IMG/VR virus record: IMGVR_UViG_3300024252_000004
Span: 186,001 to 250,000 of that record
Reading direction: 5' to 3' (one strand)
Length of the DNA: 64,000 bases
Below, piece after piece: positions 38,398 to 55,664 of this stretch. Position 1 is the stretch's first letter, and the number at the start of each line of letters is the position of its first letter. The notes beneath the pieces were generated by a model that saw nothing but the letters and a program-made list of their open reading frames with translations, searched no databases and was not told the DNA's origin. Made by a program: the position numbers and the translations under genes.

Positions 38398-39004
38398 ACC
38401 ATATACATTCCTGGCGCTTGATAAGAGGCCAGTGAAGTATATAGAGCCGCCTACATGGGACTCTATTAAAGATCAACGTAGCTTTAAGTATGCCGCGTTG
38501 GATTTTGTAATGCGGAATAGTACGGAGCCTATCAGGGCCATTTTGAAGCAGATGCCTATCGAGGGTAATCATCGTTATGTCGTAGTGGATGTTAAGTTGC
38601 ACGACATAATTGAGGGACAGTTTCCATGTCTGCCGGGATGGCACATGGACTGTACCCTAAACCCTTGGCATGATACTAAGCCTGACGTTCACCATATCTA
38701 TGTGGTTGGCGCAGGATGCAGGACAAGATTTCTTGCAGAGGATTTCACCATGGAATTTCCTACTGTGATTCCTGCACAGGTTAAGACTCTTATGAACTCA
38801 GTTGAGCATAAGAGTTGGAAAGCAGAAGAGGCTCATGTATATCGCTATGATAGATTCGGACTCCACGCTCCGTCCGTCGCTGAGTCAACCGGAAAGAGGA
38901 TGCTCATTCGGGTGACAGAAACCGATCTTATCAGACCGAACAGACGATATTTTTCTAAATTTACCACAGGACGTTATAAGGGTACGAGCCGTAGCCGCAG
39001 ATAA
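38387..39004 (+). CDS. 2OG-Fe(II) oxygenase-like protein
   Basis: PGWHMD ... H ... R pattern. Confidence 0.65.
   Translation: MNTKPYTFLALDKRPVKYIEPPTWDSIKDQRSFKYAALDFVMRNSTEPIRAILKQMPIEGNHRYVVVDVKLHDIIEGQFPCLPGWHMDCTLNPWHDTKPDVHHIYVVGAGCRTRFLAEDFTMEFPTVIPAQVKTLMNSVEHKSWKAEEAHVYRYDRFGLHAPSVAESTGKRMLIRVTETDLIRPNRRYFSKFTTGRYKGTSRSRR
38951..38978 (+). promoter_or_regulatory. phage promoter motif (overlaps the 3' end of the upstream CDS)
   Basis: TTTTCTA-N15-GTTATA. Confidence 0.75.
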
Positions 39005-39757: not shown

Positions 39758-42037
39758 ATGTCTGACGCACTAGTTAATGCTCTCCTTGATAACTCAAAGG
39801 CTGGCAACCCACGGCACTATGCCGCTGTCATTAGAGCTACGGAATCTGAAGAGGTTGCCGTTCTAAAGGCTCAGCTTGACAATCTCAAAGAGCAGATGGA
39901 GAATGCCGCAGCTTCCAGTGAAATCTTTGGAAGCATTCGCAATGCCATTCTTGGCACTGGATATGCTCGCCGCAGAAAGGCGACGAAGGATGACCTGTTC
40001 GGCAGTCTTTCTGCTGCTCCTATGGCTGGAGCTAACACAACTATCATCGATATTGTGACCTATCAGACTGCATTCATTGGTTCGTTCTCTCGTATGATCT
40101 ATGAGGGTGCCGAACTTGTTTGCAATTCGAATATCATTTCCTTTGATCAGGCTAAGACTGATCTATCGGAACAGCTTGGAGAAGACTCTAAGGTGATCGG
40201 TAAGAGTAGGGCTGATGCTATCCTTGCTAAGCTGGGGAACGCAGAGAAGGATGCGCTACAGTCTCTTGCACTGGAGCAGCAGGTAAATGCCAGCGCAGTT
40301 ACTAACTTTATGACAGGAGTTAGAAGGCTTGGTCAGGCTCTAATGATGGGTGAGGACTACTGCGCAAACATGCTTAACAGCTTTGATGGTTACTACAACC
40401 GTCTTCGTCATCGTCACACCGAGGAAGGCATTGTCGTGCAGCCTTGGCATGGAATCCCATGTCCCGTCCTCACAGACGTGGCTATCAATGTCTGGGATAA
40501 TTTGGACCGTGCCGGAGAGATTGAAGGCGGAGCTTCTACTCGTGAAGAGATTGGAGTTTATACCGTTAGGCGAGCTAAGGCTATGATTGAAGCCTGTCAT
40601 TCTCTGAGGGTTATGTTTGCCAACGCTAATGACTTCTTTGCGATGGAGCTTGAAGATATCAGAGCTACTACCACTGCCCTGCGGTCTACTGTTGTAGCAC
40701 TTGATACGATTCTTGGCAACAGTGTCTGGAAGTATTCGCCTTACAAGTTCGATGCATACGCCAAAGAGCTTTCCGATGCTTATATCGACATGAATCTGCT
40801 CGACATCCCTCCCGAGGGAAGGACTAAGGAAGCACTGGATAAGTCTGAGACTTTCGCGCTTAAGCATAGGAATGATTGTATTGCAGATATTGCAGCAATG
40901 ATTGCCTCCGAGCGTCCCGTTGATGAGATTGTTGAGGTTGCACTAGAACTGAAGCTCGAAGAGAAGGCATTCCTTCTTGAAGAGAATAGTTTCTTTGTGT
41001 GCAAGATCGGAACGGGGAACTCCTTCCTTGGTGAAGCTCCCGGTGCTATCGAAGTGATGCCGGGAGAGAAGCCTACCGCAAACCTTGACAGGATTTGGGG
41101 CTCTGGCTTTGACGAAATGCGTCATTACATCGCAGGTCTTCATACTATCAAGAAGTGGGCTCCGCTATATCTCGCAACAAGTCCAAGCTTCAGTACGGAC
41201 AAGAGCAACGTTCTTCTTGTTGGACCACAGGGTTGTGGTAAGACTGAGCTTCTGAGGGCAGTTGGTGCAGACAATGGATCCATTTCCATCTTTGCTACTG
41301 GCTCTGACTTTCTGACCTGTTGGATGGGTGAGGCTCAGAAGAACCCAAAGCGTCTCTTCAATGAGGCACGAAAGCTTCAGAAGGCTTCTGGTCGTGATGT
41401 CAATATCCTTATTGATGAGATTGATCAGGTGCTTAAGAAGGGAGATGGAAGCTCCGGTAAGGTTGACCTGTCTCTTGAGTTCCAGAACCTAATGGATGGT
41501 GTGGTTGCATACCCTGGCATTAGAATCTGGGGAGCTACTAACTTCCCCGACCTGATTCCTACTCCTATGCTTCGACGCTTTGCTCGTGTTGAGATTGTCG
41601 GAGAAATGGATCAGGAAGATAGAGAGCAGACTCTCAGATACTACATCGGCAACTTTCTTCCCACTACTGAGGATTGTGAGGATAAGTACGAAGGTTGGGC
41701 CAGAGGTCTTGAAGGTGCGACTGGAGACATTCTTCGCAAGGTTGCAGACGATGTTTGGCGCGGAACCGTTCGCTCTCTGATTGATGTGAATGAGGATCTT
41801 GCAGAAGAGATTGTCACGTACCTTGTCGATACCTACGGAGAACGCTTCTCCGCTCAGGATCTTTCTGACGAGGATAGAGAACTTATCAAGGAAATGATGG
41901 GCGAGCACAAGGTAGGTCCCCTTGTCGTACAGTCCTGTATCACTAAGCTACTTGGCAATCAGGCAATCAAGGATCAGATTGCCGGTGCCAGCAATACTTA
42001 CGCTCTCGCCAGACAGATGAAGCGTAAGAGTCAGTAA
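39758..42037 (+). CDS. classical-clade AAA+ ATPase with long N-terminal helical region
   Basis: GPQGCGKT, pore loop WMGE, ILIDEID, GATN, RRF. Confidence 0.9.
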   Translation: MSDALVNALLDNSKAGNPRHYAAVIRATESEEVAVLKAQLDNLKEQMENAAASSEIFGSIRNAILGTGYARRRKATKDDLFGSLSAAPMAGANTTIIDIVTYQTAFIGSFSRMIYEGAELVCNSNIISFDQAKTDLSEQLGEDSKVIGKSRADAILAKLGNAEKDALQSLALEQQVNASAVTNFMTGVRRLGQALMMGEDYCANMLNSFDGYYNRLRHRHTEEGIVVQPWHGIPCPVLTDVAINVWDNLDRAGEIEGGASTREEIGVYTVRRAKAMIEACHSLRVMFANANDFFAMELEDIRATTTALRSTVVALDTILGNSVWKYSPYKFDAYAKELSDAYIDMNLLDIPPEGRTKEALDKSETFALKHRNDCIADIAAMIASERPVDEIVEVALELKLEEKAFLLEENSFFVCKIGTGNSFLGEAPGAIEVMPGEKPTANLDRIWGSGFDEMRHYIAGLHTIKKWAPLYLATSPSFSTDKSNVLLVGPQGCGKTELLRAVGADNGSISIFATGSDFLTCWMGEAQKNPKRLFNEARKLQKASGRDVNILIDEIDQVLKKGDGSSGKVDLSLEFQNLMDGVVAYPGIRIWGATNFPDLIPTPMLRRFARVEIVGEMDQEDREQTLRYYIGNFLPTTEDCEDKYEGWARGLEGATGDILRKVADDVWRGTVRSLIDVNEDLAEEIVTYLVDTYGERFSAQDLSDEDRELIKEMMGEHKVGPLVVQSCITKLLGNQAIKDQIAGASNTYALARQMKRKSQ

Positions 42038-42050
42038 AAGAGAGGCAATC

Positions 42051-43550
42051 ATGAATGAGCTAAGAACTTCTGCCGAGAACATCGGTGTGTATCGAGGATT
42101 CTATAATCGGCAGTACAATGGGGGCGGAAGGCTTGTAACTAGCGGCGCAGGATATACTGACCGTGAGAATGACGATGCGGTCATTAAGCTGATCACTGGC
42201 AACAAAAAGGCTGGTCCATTCGGAGAACTGTATCTGGAAAACCGAGCAAAGGTTATTCGCTATGGCGATACCTTTACGGTTCACACCCCTGGATTCTACA
42301 TCTATCGCAACATGCGCAAGAGAACTAAGGGAAAGTTTAACGTAATCCTCTTTACTCGGGTAGGTACATTCGACTCTTGGTCGATTTACGATAAGCTCGA
42401 TCGCTACGGTGATTCGTTTGCTGAGTTTGGAATCTTCGGAGAAAATGAACTATTTTCCGGTGAGGAATTCGAGAGATCCACACTTAAGTGTTGCATCCCT
42501 TACGGTGGTTATGGCACTCCGACGAGCCCGGTCCTCCTAGTTGCTGACATATACGGTCAGACGCTATACACTCAGTTGATGAGTAAGATTCTCGGAACGG
42601 AAAATGTCGAAGAGGCAGCCGAAGAGGTTGTCGATGAGATCAGGGTTGAGTCTGAGTATGCCTTGTTTAATGGGTACATTCCCGTCTTTGCTTCGAACAA
42701 TTCAGTTATCACTGTTAAAAGCGATGGCACAGTTGAGGACTTCAAGTTTCCTTACTCTCCAGATGCAGATCCGTCTAGTGTTGCAGGGAACATTAAGGAT
42801 GGCACAGCCTATTGGGGACGCAGAAGTATCATGAGGCACTGGAATTCCGATTATGATGACTATTCTCCTGCCGAGTTTATCTTCTACGATGAGTTCAAGA
42901 ATGAGATTGTTTGGTGCGATCAGGCACAGGAAGAGTTCGCTGCATTCTGTGATACAAACCAGAAGGTGATGAAGGCTTCCTTTGATGAAAGAACCGACAG
43001 ACTGCATGATGATCCGCTGAGGGATCTGTTTGTCGGATACCTTGAGGCGATGAGTCCTATTGCGTTTAAGGAGTACATGAATGATTACTTCAAGAAAAAG
43101 GGACTCCCTAATCTGGAAGTAACGGAAGTGTGGCCAGCCATGTGCTGCGGTGGAAAAACCGTACACGATTGGGACACAGGCCATAGTGAGTTTATGACCT
43201 CAAAGGATATGGGGTATTACATTGAGGTTGCTTATAACGGTAAGAAAATCATTGGTGGGAACTCCGGAACCTCTTTCTCCTGGCTTGCCGTAAAGCATCA
43301 GAGGGAGAAGGATAGGGTCAGACTGATTCACTCCAGTCGTTGTCAGCACATCTCTTCGTGGTCCAAGCATACAACTGATCAGGGTTACGCTCACTGGGAG
43401 ATTTCGGACTGGATTACTGGTCCGATGGCTGAAGAGTCCCGGCTTAAGATCGGAGATTGCCCTGCTGTCTTCATGGGTCGTGACTCTACTGGTAAGTCCA
43501 GAAAGAAGCTTGCGATGGAGACTCTGAGGGCAAGGATGGCGAATCTCTGA
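42051..43550 (+). CDS. hypothetical protein, paralog of 51599-53020, conserved C-terminal Cys
   Basis: YIPVF, TEVWP, RCQHISSWSK, DWITGP shared with the paralog. Confidence 0.8.
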   Translation: MNELRTSAENIGVYRGFYNRQYNGGGRLVTSGAGYTDRENDDAVIKLITGNKKAGPFGELYLENRAKVIRYGDTFTVHTPGFYIYRNMRKRTKGKFNVILFTRVGTFDSWSIYDKLDRYGDSFAEFGIFGENELFSGEEFERSTLKCCIPYGGYGTPTSPVLLVADIYGQTLYTQLMSKILGTENVEEAAEEVVDEIRVESEYALFNGYIPVFASNNSVITVKSDGTVEDFKFPYSPDADPSSVAGNIKDGTAYWGRRSIMRHWNSDYDDYSPAEFIFYDEFKNEIVWCDQAQEEFAAFCDTNQKVMKASFDERTDRLHDDPLRDLFVGYLEAMSPIAFKEYMNDYFKKKGLPNLEVTEVWPAMCCGGKTVHDWDTGHSEFMTSKDMGYYIEVAYNGKKIIGGNSGTSFSWLAVKHQREKDRVRLIHSSRCQHISSWSKHTTDQGYAHWEISDWITGPMAEESRLKIGDCPAVFMGRDSTGKSRKKLAMETLRARMANL

Positions 43551-43753
43551 TGACTAAGATCATTCTGCGATTTCCGAACGTTTCCAAAGAGGACCTGAAA
43601 AAGAAACTTGATCCTGCGGTTGAGAACTTCAATCTCTCCGCAGAGTATCAGGACGAAGAGGTTGCTATTGTTGGGCCGGAAAGAGCTATCAATGCTATCC
43701 AGCAGGCTTATCTAACTCAGAAGCTGATGAGTGATCTGGGAGTAAGGTTCTGA
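43550..43753 (+). CDS. hypothetical protein
   Basis: TGATG coupling. Confidence 0.6.
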   Translation: MTKIILRFPNVSKEDLKKKLDPAVENFNLSAEYQDEEVAIVGPERAINAIQQAYLTQKLMSDLGVRF

Positions 43754-43778
43754 TCCGATAAGGATCGTCCTTCAAACA

Positions 43779-44081
43779 ATGGGGTTCACGATGTATGGTG
43801 TCACTTTTGAATTCGCAGAGAAGGCAAAGCATTTTGTCTCCTACCAGTATGATAACTGCAAGATTTATATTCCAAGAAGCTATGTAGACGAACGATATAC
43901 GAAAATGGGCCTTCCGTATTTCTGGTCGTATAAAGATGACGGAAGCTTTAATATGAGTTGGTCGAATATGTCTCACGAATATATATGTTACGGAAAATTC
44001 TATTCCATTTTGAACGAAGATGAGAAGCTGGAATTTGCTTCAGATATTATGCCAGAACTAGAGAAACTTTGTAGACGTTAG
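43779..44081 (+). CDS. hypothetical protein (CxG...L..EE family)
   Basis: CYGKFYSILNEDEK. Confidence 0.55.
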   Translation: MGFTMYGVTFEFAEKAKHFVSYQYDNCKIYIPRSYVDERYTKMGLPYFWSYKDDGSFNMSWSNMSHEYICYGKFYSILNEDEKLEFASDIMPELEKLCRR

Positions 44082-44121
44082 GTGATCACGCAGGTTATCT
44101 TCCGTTGTTACTGAGGCAATA

Positions 44122-44730
44122 ATGTTTACTTCATACGGAAGACTAAGGTATGATCCTAAGTTTCGTAAAAGGTTTGATCCCTGGTGGGCGCTGCTTGAGT
44201 GCAACGACCATGACTATAACCTTTACAGGTGGCTAATCAAACAGAGAAGGTCCTACAAGATGCACTCTGCTGACTGGCTAAAAATGGTCGGACTGCCGGA
44301 GAGTGATAAGGTATGGACGGTTGATGTCCCTTACGGTCCAGTAGTGAGGCCAGCTTGGGGGACACATATCTCTGTTGTTAGAGGTGAGAAGCCTTCAAAC
44401 CCTGATGCTTGGAGAAAGTATCAGGGCAAGAGGTTTAAGTTCACTTACGATCCTGAGTATATAAACACTAACGGTAGACACTGGTGGTTCAGGACACATT
44501 GTCCTGAGCTTGAGGAAGTAAGAGTCGAGCTTGGCTTAACTCCTCAGCCAACATATGTTCATCGGTATACGAAGAGAACGAAGATCAATCACATGCATCT
44601 AACATTCGGGAAGAATGTAGAGACTCCTTCATACAAAGCCCTCAAGAAAAATGCGAGAGCAACCTCTCGAAAGGCTCCGAAGAAAACCCAGCCAGAAGTG
44701 GTTGTTCATCGGCGCAGGCGACGCAAGTAA
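44122..44730 (+). CDS. 2H phosphoesterase-family protein
   Basis: HISV and HLTF motifs; YDPEYI..N..HWW shared with 30329. Confidence 0.7.
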   Translation: MFTSYGRLRYDPKFRKRFDPWWALLECNDHDYNLYRWLIKQRRSYKMHSADWLKMVGLPESDKVWTVDVPYGPVVRPAWGTHISVVRGEKPSNPDAWRKYQGKRFKFTYDPEYINTNGRHWWFRTHCPELEEVRVELGLTPQPTYVHRYTKRTKINHMHLTFGKNVETPSYKALKKNARATSRKAPKKTQPEVVVHRRRRRK

Positions 44731-44735
44731 GGAAT

Positions 44736-44763
44736 TTTTCTAAATTTCCCCTAAGATGTTATA
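44736..44763 (+). promoter_or_regulatory. phage promoter motif
   Basis: TTTTCTA-N15-GTTATA. Confidence 0.78.
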
Positions 44764-44837
44764 GGAAAATGAGGGGGGGCACCATATCTTTGAGCCTTCT
44801 ATTGACCTACTAATATTCACCTTTCACATAGTGAGAG

Positions 44838-45506
44838 GTGAATGTGCCAAAAAAGAAATTCAGTTGTAAAAACTGTAATACGGTCACAGAAAGATATAGG
44901 AGCACGGTAAGAAATCCAGACAAAGTCTTTTGTTCTAAAGAATGTAAAGGCTCTTGGCAAAAAGGTAAGACTACCGGAAAGGATAATCCAAACTATCGCG
45001 GCGGACTACACTGCGAACAATCCTACTGCAAGTGTGGTTCTGAGAAAGACTATAGAAGTGAGCAGTGCATGAACTGTCGTTCTATCGTTTTCAATATGGA
45101 TCAAATCCTGTTGGCAATAGCGAATAGTAAGAGCTACAGTGAAGCTTCAGTCAATCTTGGAATGTCGCGAACATACCTAACGAAATATATCAAAGAGCAC
45201 AAATTAGATATAGCACACTTTAGGCCGGGAAGAAATAGGGAGATTCCTAACGAAGAGTTATTCTCAAAATCTTTTTCGAGAAGAAATAACACGGTTAAAA
45301 AAAGAATAACTAGAGATAAACTGCTTGTCAATTCCTGTTTGTGGTGTGGAATTACAGACACTTGGAATGACAAGCCTATAACATTAGAACTTGATCACAT
45401 CAATGGTGATCCTACTGATAATCGTATTGACAATTTGCGTTTACTGTGTCCTAATTGCCACAGCCAAACTCCCACGTCGAAAGGTAAAAACAGTAGAAAA
45501 AAATAG
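44838..45506 (+). CDS. free-standing HNH endonuclease
   Basis: LELDHINGDPTDNRIDNLRLLCPNCHSQT; AT-rich. Confidence 0.9.
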   Translation: MNVPKKKFSCKNCNTVTERYRSTVRNPDKVFCSKECKGSWQKGKTTGKDNPNYRGGLHCEQSYCKCGSEKDYRSEQCMNCRSIVFNMDQILLAIANSKSYSEASVNLGMSRTYLTKYIKEHKLDIAHFRPGRNREIPNEELFSKSFSRRNNTVKKRITRDKLLVNSCLWCGITDTWNDKPITLELDHINGDPTDNRIDNLRLLCPNCHSQTPTSKGKNSRKK

Positions 45507-45517
45507 GAGGTGCCGCT

Positions 45518-46167
45518 ATGTCAGGTCAGAAGACTTTTTTCACTTCTGACCTCCATTAGCTGGAGGTCACTTTTTTCATCACAATATAATTAAATATTCT
45601 AACAGACCTTATCGTGATTCGCATGGCGAGCCTGATGTGAATGCAATGAATGAGGGAATTGTTAATAACTGGAATGAAGTAGTTGGTCCTAAAGACCGAG
45701 TATTTATCCTGGGCGATGTAGCAATGGGCGGAATGTCTAAAGCTCCTTACCTCGCAGAATACCTGCGTCGTCTTAACGGTGACAAATATTTGGTTCCTGG
45801 CAACCATGATACTTACATTCTCAATAGCGAAGAATGTATGGAAGAGCTAACCTTGCTTCCTGCCGTTTACGAACTGAAGATTCCAGATGACACTCTTCCT
45901 AAGCGAAAGAATGGTCGTATGAAGCGTCAGACGATTGTTCTGTGTCACTACTCTATGAGAGTATGGCACAAAAATGGCAAGGGTGCTTGGCATCTATTCG
46001 GCCACAGTCATGGCAGCATGGATGGCATCGGACTATCTTTCGATGTTGGTTTCGACGGACCATACTCTAATCATCGCCCTATGAGTTATGAGCAGGTTCG
46101 CGACGTTATGAGTAACCGAGAAATGGCTCTACTTGATCATCACGGCGAACATACAAGCTACCATTAA
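45518..46167 (+). CDS. metallophosphoesterase interrupted by a 14-nt insertion (45557-45570); candidate translational bypass
   Basis: AGGAGG-ATG, MSGQKTFFTSDLH then TAG; resumes FFHHNIIKY...LGDV, GNHD, HY, GHSH in another frame. Confidence 0.8.
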
Positions 46168-46177
46168 GAGGTGTTCT

Positions 46178-47395
46178 ATGCAGTTCGAGGACTTCTGTAA
46201 AGCTCTCAACGAAAGCAAGTGGCGAGGCTGGATTCACGAAGTTGGATTCGGCCTCCCTTTGCAGGCTTCTTATCTCGATGTTCCTGGGGCTTCCGCTACC
46301 ATTATCAGTACAGGCTGTCTGTATGATAAAAGTGTGCAGGGTCTTGGGAGTATTCGTTCTGTAAGCAGAGAAGGCGCCACAAGGTTTGCTGCTGGCTTCA
46401 TGGAAGGTCAGTTGGGCAAGCTCCCTGAGTCTTATGAGGACCTGTTCAGCATCGCTGTGAGTGGGGCACACAAGACTGCTGAGAAGCGTGGTGATAGTCA
46501 TGCCTGGATCTCTCTCATTACTGTCTCCACCGGATTTGAGCTTGATGGAGAAGAATGGAATGTGCATGTAACCTTCGATAAGGATGAGTTCGAAGACAGA
46601 AAGGTTGCCGGTCAAGTGCTGGCACAAATCTGTCAAGACCTTATGTGTTCGGTCTTTAAGCTTGACGTTTGGACAGTCGATAGGTTCATCCGAAAGTATC
46701 GTGATGCTTCCGGCTTCTCTGTCGATGTTGTCAGTAATCATTTCCCTGGAAATTGCCTGACTCTTGAGCAGCAAATCTCTTTGGCAGGAACAGGTAAGCC
46801 TGTCTTCATCAGAGAAGGTAAGCTTGTTCGTCCGACTGACATTCTGAGAGAGAAGACCACAATCTACAGGGGTTCATTCAATCCTCCGACCAAATCTCAC
46901 GATGCTATTGGTGGCGATGCCATCTATGAAATCGTCATCTATAATGCTCGAAAGGGTATGGCCGACTTGGGAGACGTAGCACACAGAGTTAGAATGCTCA
47001 ACGCTATGGGCAAGACAGTTATGATCACCTACTCTGAGGCATTGTTTTCAGAGATTGATTTTGTCTTGAGAAGGATTGTTGACGCAAACTATAGTTATAT
47101 TGTTGGAGTTGATACTTTCAATGCAGTTGTAGACCCGAAGTGGTATGACTATTACCCTTACGAACTTGAAACTTTCAAGAACGGTAGTCGCTTTATCGTA
47201 GCTGGAAGAGACGATGCTCCGATCAAGAAAACTGTCATTGCGGAGTACATTCAATACGAAAGGCTAACCGGTGTTGAGTATGATCACGCCATTAGTTCTT
47301 CGAGAGTTAGAGGTGGAGAGAGCAATCTCTGTCCCGAATCAGTTCAGAAATACATTGCTGATAACAAGTTGATAAACTATCCCGCAAAGTCTTAG
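46178..47395 (+). CDS. NadD-like nucleotidyltransferase with CinA-like N-terminal region
   Basis: YRGSFNPPTKSH, VGVDT, ISSSRVR; N-terminal PGAS...Y...SVS pattern. Confidence 0.7.
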   Translation: MQFEDFCKALNESKWRGWIHEVGFGLPLQASYLDVPGASATIISTGCLYDKSVQGLGSIRSVSREGATRFAAGFMEGQLGKLPESYEDLFSIAVSGAHKTAEKRGDSHAWISLITVSTGFELDGEEWNVHVTFDKDEFEDRKVAGQVLAQICQDLMCSVFKLDVWTVDRFIRKYRDASGFSVDVVSNHFPGNCLTLEQQISLAGTGKPVFIREGKLVRPTDILREKTTIYRGSFNPPTKSHDAIGGDAIYEIVIYNARKGMADLGDVAHRVRMLNAMGKTVMITYSEALFSEIDFVLRRIVDANYSYIVGVDTFNAVVDPKWYDYYPYELETFKNGSRFIVAGRDDAPIKKTVIAEYIQYERLTGVEYDHAISSSRVRGGESNLCPESVQKYIADNKLINYPAKS

Positions 47396-47405
47396 GATTT
47401 TTCAA

Positions 47406-47720
47406 ATGACTATTACCCGAAAGAATGATCCGGATCTTCGTTTTGATTTTCTGACTTCAGAAAAATATCAGTTTAATCCGAGCGACTATGATACGACCGG
47501 TCATTACTCTGCTGACAGAAAGGCACTTCTAATCCCAGGTGTCTATGATGTGAAGGATCCTCAGAAAAAAAACGGGAACGTTACTTATCTTTTTAAAGCA
47601 AGAGATAATGGGCGAGCAGTTCGAAAGCGCCTTTGCTTGGGAGAATTCGCAGCACTTCTGAACGAAGAAGAGAGGGCGGCTTTTGCAATGATCGCAGAGG
47701 AATTGACCGTCGGATTCTGA
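47406..47720 (+). CDS. hypothetical protein (CxG...L..EE family)
   Basis: CLGEFAALLNEEER. Confidence 0.55.
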   Translation: MTITRKNDPDLRFDFLTSEKYQFNPSDYDTTGHYSADRKALLIPGVYDVKDPQKKNGNVTYLFKARDNGRAVRKRLCLGEFAALLNEEERAAFAMIAEELTVGF

Positions 47721-47802
47721 TGATTATTAATATCTTTTTATACCTTCTGTGTGATGATTCACACAGAGATTCACGGTATAATTAAAAGGTGGAAGGTACA
47801 TA

Positions 47803-48078
47803 ATGAAAAGAGTTCTTTATGCTGAAATTGAGGCACTGAACATTAATGCTTGGGTTACCAGCCTTGGTGTGCCAGAGGACTCTGTTTCTATCGTGGAGTT
47901 TCTGCTGACTGGTCACTATAAATCAGAGAGACTTGAAGTCTCTTGGGAACCGAGCGAAGCTGTGGAGATTTATCTGCTTGCTCTTTGGAGTGCAGGATTC
48001 GGAGGCCATCATCACTCTAAGAGTGTAGCGAAAGCTGCCGTAAAGAAGCACATCTTCGGATCAGATTTCCTATTGTAA
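47803..48078 (+). CDS. hypothetical protein
   Basis: purine-rich RBS. Confidence 0.55.
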   Translation: MKRVLYAEIEALNINAWVTSLGVPEDSVSIVEFLLTGHYKSERLEVSWEPSEAVEIYLLALWSAGFGGHHHSKSVAKAAVKKHIFGSDFLL

Positions 48079-48087
48079 AGGTGAGGT

Positions 48088-48321
48088 ATGGACGACGAGA
48101 ATGATGACATTTTTGAGGAAGAAGATTCCGGAACACTAATGTATCACGTTGTCTTTAAGGGAGGTGGTATGCTCAGAGTAGAGCTTCCCATTGATGAAGT
48201 ACCTCAGTCTAAAGATGAATTGGTTCTGGCCAGAAACGTCAGTCCAGTAGTTTACTACACAGGTGCGATTCTTGACTGGAATCAAGTTGCTGCTTGTGTT
48301 CCCGATTACTCTACAGTATGA
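48088..48321 (+). CDS. hypothetical protein
   Basis: AGGTGAGG RBS. Confidence 0.55.
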   Translation: MDDENDDIFEEEDSGTLMYHVVFKGGGMLRVELPIDEVPQSKDELVLARNVSPVVYYTGAILDWNQVAACVPDYSTV

Positions 48322-49011
48322 TTAATAAGATTTGCCATCTTTATATCTTTCGCGCCTCTTATATCTTCCCATGCCTTTGTTCTTACCTTTATAAGTATCA
48401 GTCTGAGCATGACAATTTGGACAGATTAATCTAAGATTCGATAAAGAATTGTTTTCTGAGTTACCATCGATGTGATCTAATTCAATCGGCATTGGTAACT
48501 CATTCCATTCTAACAAATCGCACACAGAACATTTGCTTCCGTTGTGTTTTAAAAGATATCTTTTTCCAACTACCGCAGAAAACTTTCCAGATGCTATTCT
48601 TTTCTCAAGATCAAAATCATGCTGGCAATAGTTTGAGCAATACTTTGCAGAACCTCTCTTGGTTTTTTTGCCGCAATTTACACAATCTGATGCGGGTTTA
48701 CCATTTCTGGTGACGCCTACATTGTGAAATGAAGCAGAGCAGCTATGAGAACAAAATTTGGAATTAGCTTTAGCGTAGTTGGTGAATGAATTGCTGCAAC
48801 CTAAACAAATATATTCTACGAGAACTTCATTAAATAAACTCCTGCATTGACCTGAACAAAATGAATGCGTAAGATTTTTTCGAATGGAACGCAAAACTGA
48901 ATGCTTATTTATGCGATAAGCTTCATCGCATTGATCACACTCAAGAGTTACAATTTCTCTTGATTTGAAGTCTGATAACCACTCTCTGATGTTATCATCT
49001 GAATATTTCAT
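48322..49011 (-). CDS. free-standing HNH endonuclease with multiple Zn fingers
   Basis: IELDHIDGNSENNSLSNLRLICPNCHAQT; AT-rich; inverted, next to a tRNA. Confidence 0.9.
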   Translation of the reverse strand: MKYSDDNIREWLSDFKSREIVTLECDQCDEAYRINKHSVLRSIRKNLTHSFCSGQCRSLFNEVLVEYICLGCSNSFTNYAKANSKFCSHSCSASFHNVGVTRNGKPASDCVNCGKKTKRGSAKYCSNYCQHDFDLEKRIASGKFSAVVGKRYLLKHNGSKCSVCDLLEWNELPMPIELDHIDGNSENNSLSNLRLICPNCHAQTDTYKGKNKGMGRYKRRERYKDGKSY

Positions 49012-49024
49012 GTCTTCCTTTTAT

Positions 49025-49102
49025 GGCCGTCTAACTCAATTGGCTTAGAGTACCTACCTCGTAAGTAGGAAGTTTCCGGTTCGAGCCCGGAGTCGGCCTC
49101 CA
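49025..49102 (+). tRNA. tRNA-Thr(CGT)
   Basis: CCTAC-CTCGTAA-GTAGG, canonical T arm, CCA; one acceptor mismatch. Confidence 0.88.
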
Positions 49103-49180
49103 TATGCTTTATCTTAAGAAAATAATAGAAGTATCACTTCATTAAAAATAAATTGCTCCATAACATATAGGAAAGCTATA

Positions 49181-49588
49181 ATGGCTAAATACGATATGTC
49201 TCCACACATCAGAAACCTTGATAATTTCGTCGGCTGGATCTTTATCCGCACTGTTACCAGAGAGGCTGAAAAGAATCTTGGTGATGGCGGAAAGTTCTGG
49301 GAACAGTTCCCTGGAATGCGGGAGGCACACAAAGCAGGAGAGATTGATATCTCTCTGACGATTCAGGGTGTTGAAGTAGACTTTGTCGATGTGATGAATC
49401 AGGTTTACGCAGAGTACCGTAAGGCTGTCGCCGATGACTCTCGCACTCTCGCCAAGACTCTTATCTCTGACGAGTTGTCTGATAAGATTGATCTTATCAA
49501 GGACATGCTTGACGAGGTTGAGTCTAAGATTGCGGAAGAGATTCCTGAGGATAAACTGGCGAACATTAGAGAATGGCATAGCGATTGA
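49181..49588 (+). CDS. hypothetical protein
   Basis: AGGA RBS. Confidence 0.65.
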   Translation: MAKYDMSPHIRNLDNFVGWIFIRTVTREAEKNLGDGGKFWEQFPGMREAHKAGEIDISLTIQGVEVDFVDVMNQVYAEYRKAVADDSRTLAKTLISDELSDKIDLIKDMLDEVESKIAEEIPEDKLANIREWHSD

Positions 49589-49611
49589 CTATGCTATAAC
49601 TTAGGAGTTCA

Positions 49612-50043
49612 ATGACCGAAGGAACCATAGGATTTACGGGAACAAGAGAAGGCTTGACTAATCTTCAAGTTTTCGAATTGGCCCGGTTGTTTGTGATAAA
49701 TTCAGAGCTATACGATACGTTCATACACGGGGACTGTATCGGTGCTGATGCTGACGCAGACCACATTGCGTACTCATTGGGTTACGCAATTAAGATGAGA
49801 CCATGTACTCTCGAAAGTATGAGAGCTTACTGTCGATCCGGTATAATAGTAGCAGAGCCAATGCCTCCCTTGGAGCGAAATAAGTTAATCGTCGGTGATT
49901 CGAATCTGATGATTGCTTGCCCCAAGGAAATGAAAGAGGTTCGTCGCTCTGGTACTTGGGCGACAATTAGGCACTCTATCAAGATGGGCACTAAATTGGT
50001 TATCATATATCCTGATGGTAGTCTGGAGGTAAAGAATGACTAA
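49612..50043 (+). CDS. SLOG (DprA/YspA-like) family protein
   Basis: IGFTGTR, HGDCIGAD, RN, SGTWATIR. Confidence 0.8.
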   Translation: MTEGTIGFTGTREGLTNLQVFELARLFVINSELYDTFIHGDCIGADADADHIAYSLGYAIKMRPCTLESMRAYCRSGIIVAEPMPPLERNKLIVGDSNLMIACPKEMKEVRRSGTWATIRHSIKMGTKLVIIYPDGSLEVKND

Positions 50044-50260
50044 GAGTAGAGAAGAGTTTTTGCATAGAAAGAGTTTGATCCTGGGTAAGATGTTCCGCGA
50101 GGCTTATGAGCGTTGTGGCAAAGATCATCAAATCACTAAGGATCTTCTTGAAAGATATTGCAATACTCGCAGAGAGCTACCGGGTGAAGGGAATGACGGT
50201 CAACGTCAGTCTACAAGACTTGGAGCGTATGAGGCTTTCCAGTCAACGCAAGAAGGCTAA
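50036..50260 (+). CDS. hypothetical protein
   Basis: GGAGGT RBS. Confidence 0.5.
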   Translation: MTKSREEFLHRKSLILGKMFREAYERCGKDHQITKDLLERYCNTRRELPGEGNDGQRQSTRLGAYEAFQSTQEG

Positions 50261-50283
50261 GAAAGAAACACATTCTGCATAGC

Positions 50284-50316
50284 AAAAAAGGGACACTGTA
50301 ATGGTGTCCCTTTTTT
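50284..50316. terminator. intrinsic terminator
   Basis: AAAAAAGGGACAC/GTGTCCCTTTTTT. Confidence 0.8.
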
Positions 50317-50350
50317 CGTGGCCGCCGGGGAGAAAAACTTGATAGCGGAT

Positions 50351-50486
50351 TTTTCTACATTTCTCACAAGACGTTATACTAAGCCAGCAGCACGGCGCTG
50401 CAAACAACGTACAGCATCGGGCAAGCGGAAAACGAAACAAACTGTCGATAGACGAAAGTTTTCCAAATTTCCCACAGGATGTTATA
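50351..50486 (+). promoter_or_regulatory. tandem phage promoter motifs (50351-50378, 50459-50486)
   Basis: TTTTCTA-N15-GTTATA and TTTTCCA-N15-GTTATA. Confidence 0.78.
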
Positions 50487-50530
50487 CGATGGTGTCGGGT
50501 GAGCCGATAACGATTAAGGAGCGCGAAAGC

Positions 50531-50911
50531 ATGTCAAGTCGCAATGCAAAGTGGGATAAGGCGGTCAGTGATAAGACGCCTCTGAACCCAGAAGATACTC
50601 TCGCTTACTACGAGAATGTTCAGCTTGACCCCACCGCTGGTCTTTCCAGCCGTGACCGTGCTCGAATTGCTGGATGGATGAGTGCTACGAAGAATAGCTC
50701 CAACCAGCCTGATACTGTCGAGCTTTCAGATGGCGACAAGAGATACCTTGCCCGTCTGGACAAGAGAGCTAACGCTCTCCCCGCTGACAACACACAGTTT
50801 ATACAGCCGGTTGATTACTACAAGCTCCTTGGAGACGCATGGGACAATATGTACGTGTGGTTTAAGGGGAACAGTTGGCCAAAGGCCCGACCGGTTACTA
50901 CAGAGTCTTAG
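50531..50911 (+). CDS. hypothetical protein
   Basis: AAGGAG RBS before ATG 50531. Confidence 0.65.
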   Translation: MSSRNAKWDKAVSDKTPLNPEDTLAYYENVQLDPTAGLSSRDRARIAGWMSATKNSSNQPDTVELSDGDKRYLARLDKRANALPADNTQFIQPVDYYKLLGDAWDNMYVWFKGNSWPKARPVTTES

Positions 50912-50980
50912 AGAGAAGAAGGAAAGGGTTGCTATTTTGACCTTGACCAATTAATTAAAACAAAAGAAAGGAAATTACAT

Positions 50981-51448
50981 ATGTCTGCTGAATTCGATCT
51001 TCGTCCCGATGACCTCGTCATCATTCGTCTTACCCTTCGCGGTCGCGATGGCGGTGCTGCCGTCAACGTGAATGAGACCCCTACTGTTGCTGATCTCGGC
51101 CTCGGTCAGGATGCTCCTACCGTCGAGCCCCCAACGCTCGATACTGCCGAGTACGCTCGCCTGCTTTCTGCTGGCGGAAGTGATGCTGAGGCTGCCCTTC
51201 GTATGCTCGCTGAGTTTAACGAGGCAACCGCTGACTTCATGGCTGCTGGTGGAACCCCTCCTGCTGAGTCTCTGGCTCAGGCAGTGGTTGACTGGGTCGT
51301 TGAGACCCGTCCTGGCGGACACAAGTTCGTTACCACTGACTCCGCAGACGGCTACGTGATCTCCGCTCGTGAGATCAACATCCACCAGGTTAGCCTTGGT
51401 GATGATGACCGTGCCTTCCGTGTCACCGCTGTCGGTACTTGGGGCTGA
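50981..51448 (+). CDS. second Ubl-like candidate ending VGTWG
   Basis: terminal aromatic-Gly; N- and C-terminal strand patterns echo the 34061 Ubl; very biased codons; E1 two genes downstream. Confidence 0.5.
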   Translation: MSAEFDLRPDDLVIIRLTLRGRDGGAAVNVNETPTVADLGLGQDAPTVEPPTLDTAEYARLLSAGGSDAEAALRMLAEFNEATADFMAAGGTPPAESLAQAVVDWVVETRPGGHKFVTTDSADGYVISAREINIHQVSLGDDDRAFRVTAVGTWG

Positions 51449-51502
51449 TTAACTGAGCGTAAAGCTTAGTTAGTCGCGAAGGGTCAAAAATAGCTAAACA
51501 CT

Positions 51503-51540
51503 GGGGGTCGGTAGTTCGGAAGTTCTACCGACCCCCTTTG
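51503..51540 (+). terminator. intrinsic terminator
   Basis: GGGGGTCGGTAG/CTACCGACCCCC-TTTG. Confidence 0.75.
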
Positions 51541-51598
51541 TCCATTCTTCTCTAAAGAATAAAACATTAAACATAACACCAATAACCTTTACTCATAG

Positions 51599-53020
51599 GT
51601 GATTAGAATGTCCGATATTGGTAAGCTTTGGTCCACGGTAGACGTAGACCTTGAAAAGTATAAGGCCGGCACAATGCCGGAGGTTCGCAGGAGCGGCAGT
51701 TACAGTAACTGCAATTGTTCCGAGTGCCAGAGTCTTAAGGCTCTGCGTGACAATATTCTCGCCGCACGAAACGGAAGTACATTCTTCGGCATCTCCCGAG
51801 ATGTGCAGGCAAAGGTCGAAAAGGTCAAGATGTCTCTGGTCGTAGAGACTCCAGGCTTCTATAGTCTTGGCCCTATCTCGGATCAGACGAATGGTATCTT
51901 CGATACGGTCTACTTCTCCGAGCCCGGAAAGTATTCTTTCGTCAAGATTTACAAGGCCGCACGCAATGCTCCAGATGGTCTGATGCTCATTGACGATGAG
52001 ATCAGCGCTGCCTTTGGAGAGGGTGGAATTACGTCTGCTTACAGAGAGGCTTTCGGAAAGGTCTTTGTTATGGGAGAGCTTGCCGGCGATGCTTGGGGCG
52101 CTCTGAAGAATAAGATCAATCTCGCTATCCAGGGTGTTGTGCCTGAGGAAGATGAGCCTATTCTCGAAGAGGTTAACTTCGATGGAGTGTTTCTGGTCAA
52201 TGACCGATACATCCCGATGTTCTACTTCAATGACACCTTCACTATCATCACGAGTGCCGATGGTAATAGTAAGAAGTGTGAGTCCATCCCTGGTCTTCCC
52301 ACTGATGATGCGACTAAGTCGATGAACTACATCAAGAGCATCGCCAAGAAGCTTCCTAAGTGCTTCGGCTTTGCTGATGATAAGCACGCGATCCCATTCG
52401 TCTATGATACCGAGACGCATTCTCTTGCGACTGGTGTTGGGATCTCTGATGTCATTCATTGCCTTGTGAATGAGAATAAGGATAAGTTCTCTGAGGCCAT
52501 TCAGAATGTCTTTGGTCACGTTCTGAGTCCGCTTGAGTTTATTGATGCAGTGAAGCAGGACTTCGCAGTCAATGGTGCAGATGAGTTTGAGATCACCGAG
52601 TTCTGGCCTAAGCATGTTACGGCACGCTGGTCGGAGTGGGAGACTCACGATAAGCTGGACCACTCTGTTACCTTCTCTGGCTATCTTGCAGGAGTTAGTT
52701 TCCAGGGTAAGCCTCTGGTTGGGAAGAATGGTTCTCAGCGTGGAGACATCCACATTCGTTTCAACCCTGAGACTGGCCGTCCTTGGCTTATGAAGTCTCC
52801 CTGGTGTCAGCGAATCAACTCTTGGTCTAAGAAGAATCATGGAGTTATCGATCAGCTTTATGATATCTGGGCTCTCGCTGACTGGCTGTCCGGTCCCTTC
52901 GCTGAAAAGTGCAACCTCAACATGAAGTCTGCTCCTTGTGTCTTTGCTGGAAACAAGATGGTTGACCGAAAGAAGAGTGCTCTTGACAAGCTTCGTGCCA
53001 AGCTTAACGCTGTAGGCTGA
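51599..53020 (+). CDS. hypothetical protein, paralog of 42051-43550, conserved Cys (possible E2-like)
   Basis: YIPMF, TEFWP, WCQRINSWSK, DWLSGP. Confidence 0.8.
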   Translation: MIRMSDIGKLWSTVDVDLEKYKAGTMPEVRRSGSYSNCNCSECQSLKALRDNILAARNGSTFFGISRDVQAKVEKVKMSLVVETPGFYSLGPISDQTNGIFDTVYFSEPGKYSFVKIYKAARNAPDGLMLIDDEISAAFGEGGITSAYREAFGKVFVMGELAGDAWGALKNKINLAIQGVVPEEDEPILEEVNFDGVFLVNDRYIPMFYFNDTFTIITSADGNSKKCESIPGLPTDDATKSMNYIKSIAKKLPKCFGFADDKHAIPFVYDTETHSLATGVGISDVIHCLVNENKDKFSEAIQNVFGHVLSPLEFIDAVKQDFAVNGADEFEITEFWPKHVTARWSEWETHDKLDHSVTFSGYLAGVSFQGKPLVGKNGSQRGDIHIRFNPETGRPWLMKSPWCQRINSWSKKNHGVIDQLYDIWALADWLSGPFAEKCNLNMKSAPCVFAGNKMVDRKKSALDKLRAKLNAVG

Positions 53021-55636: not shown

Positions 55637-55664
55637 TTTTCTGACTTTCCCATAGGACGTTATA
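55637..55664 (+). promoter_or_regulatory. phage promoter motif
   Basis: TTTTCTG-N15-GTTATA. Confidence 0.75.

Follow-up and report, generated by a model that had tools for sequence, protein, structure and literature searches.

A metallophosphoesterase gene of an uncultured marine jumbo phage is interrupted by a 14-nt hairpin segment containing a stop codon, which has been kept almost unchanged in several distantly related phages and lies next to a mobile gene for a DNA-cutting HNH enzyme. This is the pattern expected if ribosomes jump over the gap, as they do in gene 60 of phage T4, and a programmed CAU-to-CAC hop is the explanation that we consider most likely, with moderate confidence. The hop is inferred from sequence comparison alone and remains unproven, without protein, ribosome or RNA data to support it, and the main rival is a selfish cassette sitting on a dead gene.

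Anatomy of the interrupted gene

The sequence analyzed (the window) is a stretch of 64,000 nt from the 395-kb IMG/VR contig 3300024252_000004. An earlier note, made from the window alone, had described a short ORF with a strong ribosome-binding site that is closed by TAG directly after a His codon, a perfect 9-bp hairpin with the stop in its loop, a GGAGG within the insert, an HNH gene ending just upstream, and a downstream frame that resumes the phosphoesterase when 14 nt ending in CAC are skipped. We found this description to be correct in every detail (Table 1). ORF1 reads ATG TCA GGT CAG AAG ACT TTT TTC ACT TCT GAC CTC CAT before the TAG, from position 45571 the downstream frame reads FFHHNIIKYSNRPY, and the hairpin arms are complementary at 9 of 9 positions around the loop TTAGC. 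Homologs from 21 viral loci and 13 close proteins all read M-x(1-5)-[FW]-[FL]-T-[SA]-D-x-H-[FY]-x-H-x-N-I-I, and the precise removal of 45557-45570 therefore rebuilds the canonical N-terminus of the family. PDB 1xm7 aligns from its residue 4 with the FISDTHFYHENII stretch, so that the 13 residues of ORF1 are part of the fold. The motifs that define this group of enzymes (PF00149; aq_1665/1xm7-like) are D-x-H, GD, GNH[DE], H and GH-x-H, and the full set exists only if the two ORFs are joined, as D-x-H (D11, H13) is in ORF1 and GD, GNHD and GHSH are in ORF2.

Table 1. Features of the interrupted phosphoesterase locus (window coordinates)
Position	Strand	Feature	Observations
44805..44843	+	Approximate 5' edge of the cassette (HNH leader and RBS shared by all HNH-bearing lineages)	In an alignment of the window, L036, L038 and L035, similarity begins about 35-40 nt before the HNH start
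44844..45506	+	Free-standing HNH homing-type endonuclease gene, 220 aa, GTG start; stop TAG 45504-06 overlaps the next RBS	Pfam HNH_3/HNH; phrog_10822; orthologs of 68-75% aa at the same position upstream of the phosphoesterase gene in L035, L036/L033 and L038; window versus L033, dS 1.23, dN/dS 0.17
45506..45512	+	Shine-Dalgarno sequence GGAGGTG (GGAGG at 45506-10) for ORF1, 5 nt before the ATG	The stretch AAATAGGAGGTGCCRCTATG is shared by all four insert-bearing lineages
45518..45556	+	ORF1, 13 codons, MSGQKTFFTSDLH; cassette-encoded replacement N-terminus with motif I (D-x-H); proposed take-off codon CAU 45554-56	Cassette-free relatives begin MRTFFTSDLH with unrelated DNA; 4 synonymous and 1 non-synonymous codon differ among lineages
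45523..45532	+	Arm A, AGGTCAGAAG; encodes the extra residues SGQK; perfect complement of arm B' 45543-52	10-bp stem, 10-nt loop; A:B is -14.3 kcal/mol in three lineages, 8 bp in L027, absent from intact genes (-3.1)
45543..45555	+	Arm B, CTTCTGACCTCCA, codons T-S-D-L-H; pairs either with A (45543-52) or with C (45547-55)	No synonymous changes in these five codons in any lineage; pS elsewhere 0.6-0.9
45547..45569	+	B:C hairpin, arms 45547-55 and 45561-69, 9 bp, loop UUAGC, -14.7 kcal/mol; proposed analogue of the take-off stem-loop	Followed by C plus U6; best terminator-like site in 12 kb
45557..45570	+	14-nt non-coding gap, TAGCTGGAGGTCAC; UAG stop 45557-59, arm C 45561-69 (with GGAGG 45562-66), proposed landing codon CAC 45568-70	Identical in L033/L034/L036 and L038; L027 has TAGTGGAGGTTTAC, also 14 nt; columns 45543-45572 are 30/30 invariant among the three HNH-bearing lineages
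45571..46167	+	ORF2, 198 codons plus TAA (46165-67); rest of the metallophosphoesterase (GD, GNHD and GHSH motifs); no in-frame ATG/GTG/TTG before GTG 45637 or the conserved Met (Met26) at 45646	Pfam PF00149; phrog_547; dN/dS 0.07-0.09 against both insert-bearing and intact relatives; first 25 codons pS 0.68-1.0, pN 0.12-0.25

The presence of the 14 nt in independent data, and in relatives with and without the HNH gene, had been named beforehand as a test, and the insert proved to be real DNA. A Logan assembly of SRR7618073 is 100% identical over 1582 nt including the insert, eight runs hold 100% of the sampled words, and contigs from four further runs cover the site with 0 differences, giving at least 12 seawater samples in which independent assemblies are identical across it. 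Given that these comparisons rest on contigs from low-depth metagenomes (4-6x) and not on raw reads, the insert is fixed at consensus level but rare insert-free variants cannot be excluded. Perfect hairpins of 9 bp or more occur about once per 5 kb in the window, and two of them share an arm here.

Conservation of the insert and selection on the flanking genes

Four lineages carry the insert, namely the window, a second HNH-linked lineage (L033/L034/L036), a third HNH-linked lineage (L038), and a lineage without HNH (L027) that carries a 14-nt variant. The window, L033/L034/L036 and L038 have the identical 14 nt and the same ORF1 peptide, with UAG following CAU and CAC at the end of the gap, although their HNH genes are only 68-71% identical at the amino acid level and have diverged to dS about 1.2, while their ORF2s are 69-74% identical at the nucleotide level, with pS 0.7-0.9, and are saturated at synonymous sites. 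Zero changes in 14 unconstrained sites at a pS of at least 0.6 has a p of about 3e-6 per pair. In L027 UAG also follows CAU, and the variant keeps the 14-nt length through one deletion plus one insertion; the TGGAGGT that it shares with the window is read in different frames in the two, so the gap is conserved as RNA or DNA and not as codons. L027 has, however, UAC and not a His codon at the landing position (a G.U pair at position 1 only), although this comes from a contig of 1.6x coverage.

Conservation peaks at 28-30 of 30 invariant columns over 45498-45572, against 12-23 of 30 elsewhere, and it collapses right after the gap, where invariant columns drop from 30/30 to 14-17/30 after 45572. 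The gap forms the 3' end of a mobile cassette (about 44805-45570) that contains the HNH gene, a strong RBS, 13 replacement codons for the phosphoesterase N-terminus and the gap itself. The 13 codons consist of a new SGQK extension followed by a re-coded TFFTSDLH, with DNA unlike the parental MRTFFTSDLH codons of the cassette-free relatives L025 and L028. L036 is syntenic with L025, and the ORF2 of L038 is 94% identical to that of L025 beyond codon 30 but only 78% within codons 1-30 (pS 0.20 against 0.62), which resembles a co-conversion tract. Some variation in cassette content was observed, as L027 lacks the HNH gene, and L035 has the HNH gene beside an uninterrupted, distant-type gene, showing that the insert is not always required.

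Both flanks are under purifying selection (dN/dS about 0.07-0.2). ORF2 is intact in all lineages, with no stop or indel in 134-199 codons in four of four, and selection extends to its first 25 codons, a stretch that always travels with the cassette. There is no rate acceleration against intact sisters: the insert-bearing L034 has a shorter terminal branch than its intact sister L025 (0.065 versus 0.094), and on the L038 branch 7 of 8 assignable changes are synonymous. L034 and L038 nevertheless group with the intact L025, monophyly of the insert-bearing ORF2s is borderline rejected (p-AU 0.050), and there is a mosaic break in L038. Beyond the conclusion that the cassette is mosaic and mobile we did not build on this topology, and intact ORF2s could in principle be recently invaded alleles.

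Searches for related sequences

Megablast of the locus against 50,697 phage records gave no match, and the closest phosphoesterases of cultured phages are under 40% identical. DNA-pattern scans of IMG/VR found only the window's own contig, and a scan of genome contigs found nothing. The insert is single-copy in the window. A generic scan for a codon followed by a stop, a hairpin, a matched codon and a long ORF gave two other sites in the window and about ten in 47 HNH loci, all of which looked like ordinary gene ends; the bare pattern turns up by chance about once per 40-60 kb and is therefore weak evidence, and no second interrupted gene was found in the window. Distant HNH relatives in IMG/VR (42% identity or less) showed no comparable interrupted downstream gene.

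A programmed bypass as the favored explanation

We contend that the 14 nt are probably the coding gap of a programmed translational bypass. In this view, ribosomes would start at AUG 45518, unwind the B:C hairpin, and reach CAU (His13) in the P site with the slowly decoded UAG in the A site. Peptidyl-tRNA-His would then let go of its codon and the mRNA would slip forward 14 nt, helped by arm B pairing with arm A as B leaves the ribosome, the 10-bp A:B helix being complete when the P site reaches about 45568. The tRNA would re-pair with CAC 45568-70 and decoding would resume at UUU 45571, giving a 211-aa enzyme with the canonical TSDLHFFHHNII motif and a TFFTSDLHFFHHNIIK junction peptide, whereas ribosomes that fail to hop would terminate after 13 residues. 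The A:B and B:C hairpins are mutually exclusive and equal in energy, and neither exists in cassette-free genes; A:B resembles the 5' "driver" stem-loop of T4, for which a model of exiting-mRNA pairing has been put forward (bioRxiv 10.1101/2024.12.09.627546), although only its pairing potential is evident here. At the DNA level, the gap probably breaks the site that the HNH enzyme recognizes in cassette-free alleles, which would let the cassette home without killing the gene.

The anatomy, the conservation, the cassette boundaries and the selection on both ORFs are established by the present comparison, while the hop itself, the joining of the two ORFs into one polypeptide, the driver helix and the protection from the HNH enzyme are inferred. 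The interpretation of the earlier note, a very short hop element of the T4 kind that perhaps shields the HNH target site, is thus only partly supported: everything that sequence comparison can test agreed with it, but several details depart from a T4-style picture. GGAGG ends 1 nt (window) or 2 nt (L027) before the landing codon, against the 5-7 nt seen in gene 60 elements. The B:C hairpin has the CA of CAU at the top of its 5' arm, which at take-off lies in the P/E sites, and the nucleotides 3' of CAU cannot form a hairpin by themselves, so that a T4-like A-site stem-loop is not evident. ORF1 gives only a 13-residue nascent chain with no similarity to the T4 nascent-peptide signal, leaving that signal without a counterpart. 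The landing codon of L027 and the uninterrupted gene of L035 are further departures, and the enzyme is probably dispensable.

Alternative explanations

The main rival, which we regard as possible but less likely, is that the HNH cassette homes into the 5' end of a dispensable phosphoesterase gene, that the insert only destroys the HNH target site or serves as a terminator or stabilizer for the HNH transcript, and that no full-length enzyme is made, ORF2 looking healthy only because each sampled invasion is recent. The mobility and mosaicism of the cassette agree with this, as does the uninterrupted gene of L035, and phosphoesterases of this family are accessory genes of which broken copies occur elsewhere (loci L029 and L030). 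The B:C hairpin followed by U6 also fits an intrinsic terminator, being the best-scoring site in 40000-52000 (9 pairs, 5 GC, tail CTTTTTT), but this is a pattern match only and the U-tract is the conserved Phe-Phe codons. However, immunity through an insertion does not need an exact sequence or length, yet the 14 nt are invariant across dS of about 1.2 and L027 has kept the length. Moreover, ORF1, which is never refreshed from a recipient genome, still encodes the canonical FFTSDLH with mostly synonymous differences among lineages, and the cassette-proximal codons of ORF2, its intact frame in all four lineages and the absence of rate acceleration also speak against a dead gene.

It is also conceivable, though unlikely, that the gene is expressed by another route, such as a hop to the next His codon (CAU 45577 at +23 or CAC 45580 at +26, both in the ORF2 frame like CAC at +14), removal of the 14 nt from the mRNA, or termination-reinitiation helped by the internal GGAGG. 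GGAGG lies 10-11 nt before the +23 His codon, closer to normal SD spacing than the spacing to CAC, and L027 lacks a cognate codon at +14 but has CAU at +23. A landing at +23 or +26 would give a protein 3-4 residues shorter (TSDLHHNII instead of TSDLHFFHH at the junction; TFFTSDLHHNIIK as the peptide for +23), but FFH (45571-79), which would then be untranslated, is conserved as amino acids with synonymous variation in all four lineages and in the whole family. No in-frame ATG, GTG or TTG follows the GGAGG in the window before GTG 45637, and a reinitiated product would lack D-x-H. No Rfam match was found in 44700-46300, nor any intron-like structure or BHB motif, and 14 nt is far below the size of any self-splicing intron.

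Programmed -1 (or +2) frameshifting or stop-codon readthrough is very unlikely and is contradicted by the sequence. A U UUU UUC heptamer (45535-41) does lie 5 nt before the hairpin, the classic -1 PRF layout, but the -1 frame has TGA at 45547-49, no slippery site lies between it and the TAG, and within that interval (GAC CUC CAU) no tRNA can re-pair in -1 or +2. The product would carry PLAGG (window) or PLVEV (L027) inside the metal-binding loop, L027 would lose the motif-I His, and the shared TGGAGGT is read in different frames in the two lineages. TAG readthrough stays in frame 0 and hits TAA 30 nt later; TAG is an ordinary stop in this genome, TAG, TGA and TAA all end long ORFs in the window, and the window holds no suppressor tRNA, which argues against reassignment or suppression. 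TGA readthrough from the 52-codon ORF 45391-45549 (no homology, no D-x-H), transcriptional slippage at the T6 runs (too short, and the in-frame TAG would remain) and a two-piece enzyme made of a 13-aa peptide plus a stump were also rejected. Finally, although the insert is an inverted copy of the preceding 9 nt, as a snap-back or template-switch event would make, an assembly or sequencing artifact or a private recent mutation of one phage clone, such as the template-switch pseudogene that was the fallback of the earlier note, is made most unlikely by the identical sequence from independent assemblers and 12 or more samples and by the same insert in three other lineages from JGI, ENA and Logan data, with 26-31% nucleotide divergence around it.

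Implications

The survey of Manning and Atkins (bioRxiv 10.1101/2022.08.31.505936) found natural phage bypassing only in the gene 60 lineage, where every case is homologous and lies in one gene, and an unrelated case would show that the phenomenon recurs. It can be speculated, with about as much reason to believe as to doubt it, that this is a second, independently evolved phage bypass system with the shortest programmed coding gap known, executed after only 13 codons and so without a long nascent-peptide signal, and set up by two mutually exclusive hairpins of equal energy, one of which zips up behind the ribosome and measures out the hop, the whole riding on an HNH homing cassette that targets a phosphoesterase gene. 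That would imply that an endonuclease plus a bypass gap is a general, convergent solution for invading coding sequence and not a T4 oddity. The minimal size (about 70 nt in all) would also make a much simpler experimental system, which could separate the contributions of the stop codon, the matched codon, the exiting-mRNA driver hairpin and the nascent peptide. In practical terms, gene callers split or truncate such genes (here they called 176-, 174- and 201-aa stumps), "pseudogenes" next to homing endonucleases deserve a second look, and the 5' end of this phosphoesterase family appears to be a recurrent endonuclease landing pad.

Comparison with known systems

The closest known system is the T4 gene 60 bypass carried by the MobA homing-endonuclease element (bioRxiv 10.1101/2022.08.31.505936, which cites Bonocora et al., 2011). 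In both, an HNH endonuclease sits directly upstream, the element supplies a new N-terminal extension plus a re-coded copy of the target's own codons, and the gap starts with a stop right after the take-off codon. Take-off and landing codons are read by one tRNA and differ at the wobble base (CAU/CAC here, with the exception of L027; GAU/GAC and GGU/GGC there), the take-off codon lies on the 5' side of a stem-loop with a second stem-loop upstream, the element ends at the landing codon with a clean break in identity, and some lineages have lost the endonuclease but kept the gap, L027 paralleling the MobA-less carriers. The target is however a PF00149 phosphoesterase and not topoisomerase II, the gene is not split into two proteins, the gap is 14 nt against 50 nt (20 nt in the Aeromonas clade) and has no resemblance to the 50-nt cassette, and ORF1 has 13 codons against about 46, leaving no room for the T4 nascent-peptide signal. 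The SD-like GGAGG abuts the landing codon, the stop is in the loop, and the 5' arm is the P/E-site sequence. The element is therefore an analogue of the MobA type and not a member of it.

Short "stop-hop" or hungry-codon hopping in E. coli, summarized in the introduction of the same survey, involves, like the hop proposed here, a peptidyl-tRNA that detaches at a slowly decoded A-site codon and re-pairs to a nearby matched codon over a short distance, but those are non-programmed, synthetic or adventitious events of a few percent or less, whereas here the arrangement is conserved across diverged natural genomes and flanked by dedicated structures. The mitochondrial "byp" elements of Magnusiomyces capitatus (27-55 nt; cited in the survey) are similar to what is proposed here, being short non-coding inserts that are bypassed in essential reading frames, with matched codons and a poorly decodable codon after take-off, and they are spread by mobility. 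Byps are however multi-copy GC-cluster-like elements (81 copies), while the present insert is tied to one gene and one endonuclease cassette. As in free-standing phage homing endonucleases whose own genome is protected by target-site differences, for example MobE at nrdA/nrdB, an intergenic HNH gene lies next to its presumed target gene and the flanks are mosaic, but protection here would come from a frame-breaking insertion inside the coding sequence, which then requires recoding.

Structure of the interrupted gene

The reading frame that encodes the HNH endonuclease is closed by a TAG codon, which overlaps a GGAGG element and is followed by an ATG that opens the short frame ATG TCA GGT CAG AAG ACT TTT TTC ACT TCT GAC CTC CAT TAG (ORF1). 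The 11 nt after this stop codon, CTGGAGGTCAC, end in CAC, and from the next position an open frame of 198 codons (ORF2, FFHHNIIKYSNRPY...) runs to a TAA codon. Two segments on either side of the stop are complementary at 9 of 9 positions, and the TAG lies in the 5-nt loop between them. ORF2 is a calcineurin-like phosphoesterase (Pfam PF00149; phrog_547). All homologues checked, namely 21 IMG/VR loci and 13 close proteins, begin with M-x(1-5)-FFT[SA]D-x-H-F-x-H-x-NII, and deletion of exactly 14 nt therefore recreates the family N-terminus. The solved relative 1xm7 aligns from its residue 4 with this stretch. What the earlier note had described here, a stop-containing hairpin insert of 14 nt with matched His codons, is correct in every detail. 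The 10-mer ACTTTTTTCA also occurs as an exact direct repeat on both sides of this region (the T-F-F-T codons, and CAC-FF-H read out of register), as a consequence of the two Phe-Phe pairs plus the end of the gap.

Features of the interrupted gene and of other loci observed (window positions unless another contig is named)
Feature	Position	Strand	Remark
Stop codon (TAG) of the HNH ORF	45504-06		
GGAGG before ORF1	45506-10		
Start codon (ATG) of ORF1	45518		
Putative take-off codon (CAT)	45554-56		
Stop codon (TAG) of ORF1	45557-59		
Putative landing codon (CAC)	45568-70		last codon of the 14-nt gap
ORF2	from 45571 to TAA 46165-67		
GTG in the ORF2 frame before the conserved Met	45637		
Arms of the B:C hairpin	45547-55 and 45561-69		
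Arm A and its complement in arm B	45523-32 and 45543-52		10-bp A:B helix
Invariant block (RBS, ORF1 and gap)	45498-45572		
Slippery heptamer (U UUU UUC)	45535-41		
TGA in the ORF2 frame	45547-49		
Direct repeat of the 10-mer	45533-45542 and 45569-45578		
Conserved intergenic motif upstream of the HNH	44732-44769		3-mismatch copy of its core at 55649-55666
Second, paralogous HNH gene next to a tRNA-Thr(CGU) gene	48322-49011 and 49025-49102	- (48322-49011)	
Three consecutive overlapping open frames	37383-39004	+	
Atypical tRNA calls	25265-25338 and 28615-28688		
Homologue with a run of 11 T	L029:1440-1560		ENA ERZ22666087 k127_57580831
Homologue with an apparent 2-nt deletion	L030:1-120		ENA ERZ23486354 scaffold_259213
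HNH and uninterrupted phosphoesterase of a syntenic relative	L035:3001-4330		Logan SRR7523437

Conservation of the interruption

The window is part of a 395-kb IMG/VR contig, and a Logan contig from SRR7618073 is identical to it over 1582 nt, including the insert. Eight seawater runs hold 100% of the sampled 31-mers and nine more hold most of them, and contigs from four of the latter cover the site with no differences or gaps at normal depth. The insert is thus real, although these comparisons rest on contigs alone, so that minor insert-free variants cannot be excluded, and no RNA run was listed.

The decisive finding is that the interruption is conserved. Among the closest proteins, one (P0004, 76% identical) began oddly with MEVYFFH, and its contig (L027) carries the same RBS, followed by ATG TCC GGT CAG AAA TAT TTC TTT ACT TCT GAC CTC CAT TAG, then TGGAGGTTTAC, and then TTT TTT CAT AAA AAT... 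This is the same 13-codon ORF with four synonymous codon changes and one T-to-Y change, and the gap again measures exactly 14 nt, differing from that of the window by one deletion, one insertion and one substitution. A metagenome pattern scan and a search with the HNH protein added two more lineages, L033/L034/L036/L037 (two JGI samples and one ENA assembly) and L038 (Logan), both of which have an HNH gene, the identical ORF1 peptide and the identical 14 nt. The surrounding sequence is far from identical. The HNH proteins of the window and L033 share 70.5% amino acid identity (dS 1.23, dN/dS 0.17), whereas the ORF2s show 69-74% nucleotide identity, with saturated synonymous sites (pS 0.69-0.89) and dN of 0.13-0.19. 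A column-by-column profile of the three HNH-bearing lineages gave 28-30 of 30 invariant positions across the RBS, ORF1 and gap, against 12-23 of 30 elsewhere, falling to 14-17 immediately after the gap. The probability that fourteen unconstrained sites stay identical at a pairwise synonymous difference of at least 0.6 is about 3e-6. A private template-switch mutation or an artefact is therefore excluded, and the exact sequence of the gap is under selection.

Two further homologues appear to be disrupted near this position. In L029, a distant homologue (about 41% identity) is broken at the same H|FFH site by a run of 11 T, 4 more than needed, and a LAGLIDADG-like endonuclease gene (Pfam 26 bits; phrog_4645 at 7e-19) lies immediately upstream on the other strand. 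This could be another endonuclease-linked disruption, perhaps rescued by transcriptional slippage, or a homopolymer error. The homologue in L030 has what looks like a 2-nt deletion inside the D-L-H codons (reads SDLLQS...), but it comes from a short, low-coverage contig and may be a pseudogene or an assembly error.

Selection on both reading frames

ORF2 is uninterrupted in all four lineages (198, 197, 199 and at least 134 codons) and keeps every invariant family residue. The 25 codons between the gap and the conserved Met contain no in-frame ATG, GTG or TTG, with the exception of one GTG in the window, and they nevertheless show pS of 0.68-1.0 against pN of 0.12-0.25. ORF1 carries the motif-I Asp and His, so that the full motif set exists only in a joined chain.

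No ordinary route joins the two frames, and frameshifting is ruled out. The ORF2 frame has a TGA directly after the only slippery heptamer, no tRNA can re-pair in -1 or +2 on GAC CUC CAU, a shifted product would put PLAGG (window) or PLVEV (L027) into the metal-binding loop, and the conserved TGGAGGT would be read in different frames in the two lineages. TAG, TGA and TAA all terminate long ORFs in this window, which holds no suppressor or His tRNA, and an Rfam search returned nothing. Four ordinary tRNAs (Cys, Arg, Thr, Gly) are present in the window, and ARAGORN also called a tRNA-Asn with anticodon ATT and a tRNA with a 2-nt 'anticodon', which are probably false positives or degenerate tRNA genes. 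Elsewhere in the window, three consecutive open frames of 167, 190 and 222 codons overlap one another, none with a Pfam hit, and could be ordinary overlapping genes or a frameshifted larger gene.

A mobile HNH cassette

The gap is the 3' end of a mobile HNH cassette. Similarity among HNH-bearing lineages begins about 35-40 nt before the HNH start and ends at the putative landing codon. Cassette-free relatives (L025 and L028, 79-80% amino acid identity) start with MRTFFTSDLH, and their DNA there is unrelated and unstructured (-3.1 kcal/mol). The backbones fall into two types. L036 is syntenic with the cassette-free L025, the upstream 65/67-aa gene being 64% identical and the downstream DFP-like gene 80% identical. 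The window is syntenic with L035, with flanking genes 63-79% identical and an orthologous HNH at 75%. In L035, however, the HNH gene lies directly upstream of, and overlaps by 35 nt, an uninterrupted phosphoesterase of a different subtype (45% amino acid identity, with a 30-residue N-terminal extension; the protein is also on a contig of about 406 kb), and the phosphoesterase gene has evidently been exchanged between otherwise collinear genomes. A conserved intergenic motif upstream of the HNH (TTTTTCTAAATTTCCCCTAAGATGTTATAGG) is shared with L035 and is also found on other contigs of the same metagenomes, but it is not part of the cassette, because L036 and L038 lack it; it may be a phage promoter or regulatory site. 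The second, paralogous HNH gene of the window lies in reverse orientation between plus-strand genes, and no interrupted neighbor was seen there.

In the ORF2 tree, the insert-bearing L034 and L038 pair with the intact L025 (support 90/96 and 89/96), and forcing the insert-bearers together costs 22 log-likelihood units (p-AU 0.050). L038 compared with L025 is mosaic, since codons 1-30 after the gap show pS of 0.62, whereas codons 31-134 show pS of 0.20 and pN of 0.013, which is what a co-conversion tract looks like. L027 keeps the RBS, ORF1 and gap, but no HNH lies within 345 nt upstream.

This mobility partly undercuts the selection argument, given that an ORF2 could look healthy because it was invaded recently. 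Three points argue against that reading. ORF1 and the first ORF2 codons always travel with the cassette, so that a recipient genome cannot refresh them, and they remain canonical at the protein level while varying synonymously. Insert-bearing genes show no acceleration, the terminal branch being 0.065 for L034 against 0.094 for its intact sister, and on the L038 branch 7 of 8 assignable changes are synonymous. Finally, four of four lineages are intact.

A second hairpin and a proposed mechanism

Codons 2-5 (TCA GGT CAG AAG, the SGQK extension that only cassette-bearing genes have) contain AGGTCAGAAG, the perfect complement of CTTCTGACCT. The resulting A:B helix (-14.3 kcal/mol) and the B:C helix (-14.7) are mutually exclusive and equal in energy in three lineages, and in L027 the values are -12.0 and -11.2. 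All substitutions within ORF1 fall in the A:B loop or at the stem ends, and the five B-arm codons show no synonymous change in any lineage.

We favor expression through the gap and consider the specific CAU-to-CAC hop more likely than not. The anatomy of the locus, its conservation, the limits of the cassette and the selection on both frames were established by the analysis, whereas the hop, its driver and the production of a joined protein are inferred from sequence alone; the interpretation of the earlier note, a programmed bypass of the T4 type, is to this extent only partly supported. We infer that an initiating ribosome covers arm A, so that B pairs with C, and that the elongating ribosome then melts B:C and stalls with CAU in the P site and UAG in the A site. 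As B leaves the exit channel, it would zip onto the waiting arm A and draw the mRNA forward, the 10-bp helix being complete when the P site is near 45568, where CAC would offer re-pairing to tRNA-His.

A different route to the same end is unlikely in our view. Landing at the next His codons (+23 and +26) remains possible, but it would leave the conserved FFH untranslated. The B:C hairpin followed by C-U6 is the best terminator-like site in 12 kb and may also attenuate or end HNH transcripts, although the U-tract consists of the conserved Phe-Phe codons. The bare stop/hairpin/matched-codon pattern occurs by chance about once per 40-60 kb, and the case therefore rests on homology and conservation, not on the motif.

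Comparison with the gene 60/MobA element

Manning and Atkins (bioRxiv 10.1101/2022.08.31.505936) found elements of this architecture only in topoisomerase genes, and our literature search found no report of a phosphoesterase case. The locus matches, point for point, the structure that they describe for the MobA/gene 60 element, with an endonuclease, an element-encoded N-terminal extension, a homologous replacement region, a bypass cassette (here a putative one), an end at the landing codon, and endonuclease loss with the bypass retained. The proposed mechanism is, in miniature, the pairing of exiting mRNA as forward driver that has been proposed for gene 60 (bioRxiv 10.1101/2024.12.09.627546). 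There are, however, several things that do not fit T4: GGAGG abuts the landing codon instead of lying 5-7 nt upstream, the nucleotides 3' of CAU cannot form a hairpin by themselves, so that a T4-like A-site stem-loop is not evident, the nascent chain is only 13 residues, and L027 has UAC at the landing position. We contend that this is a real, conserved recoding-type interruption on a homing-endonuclease cassette, and that its closest functional analogue is T4 gene 60/MobA, of which it is not a member.
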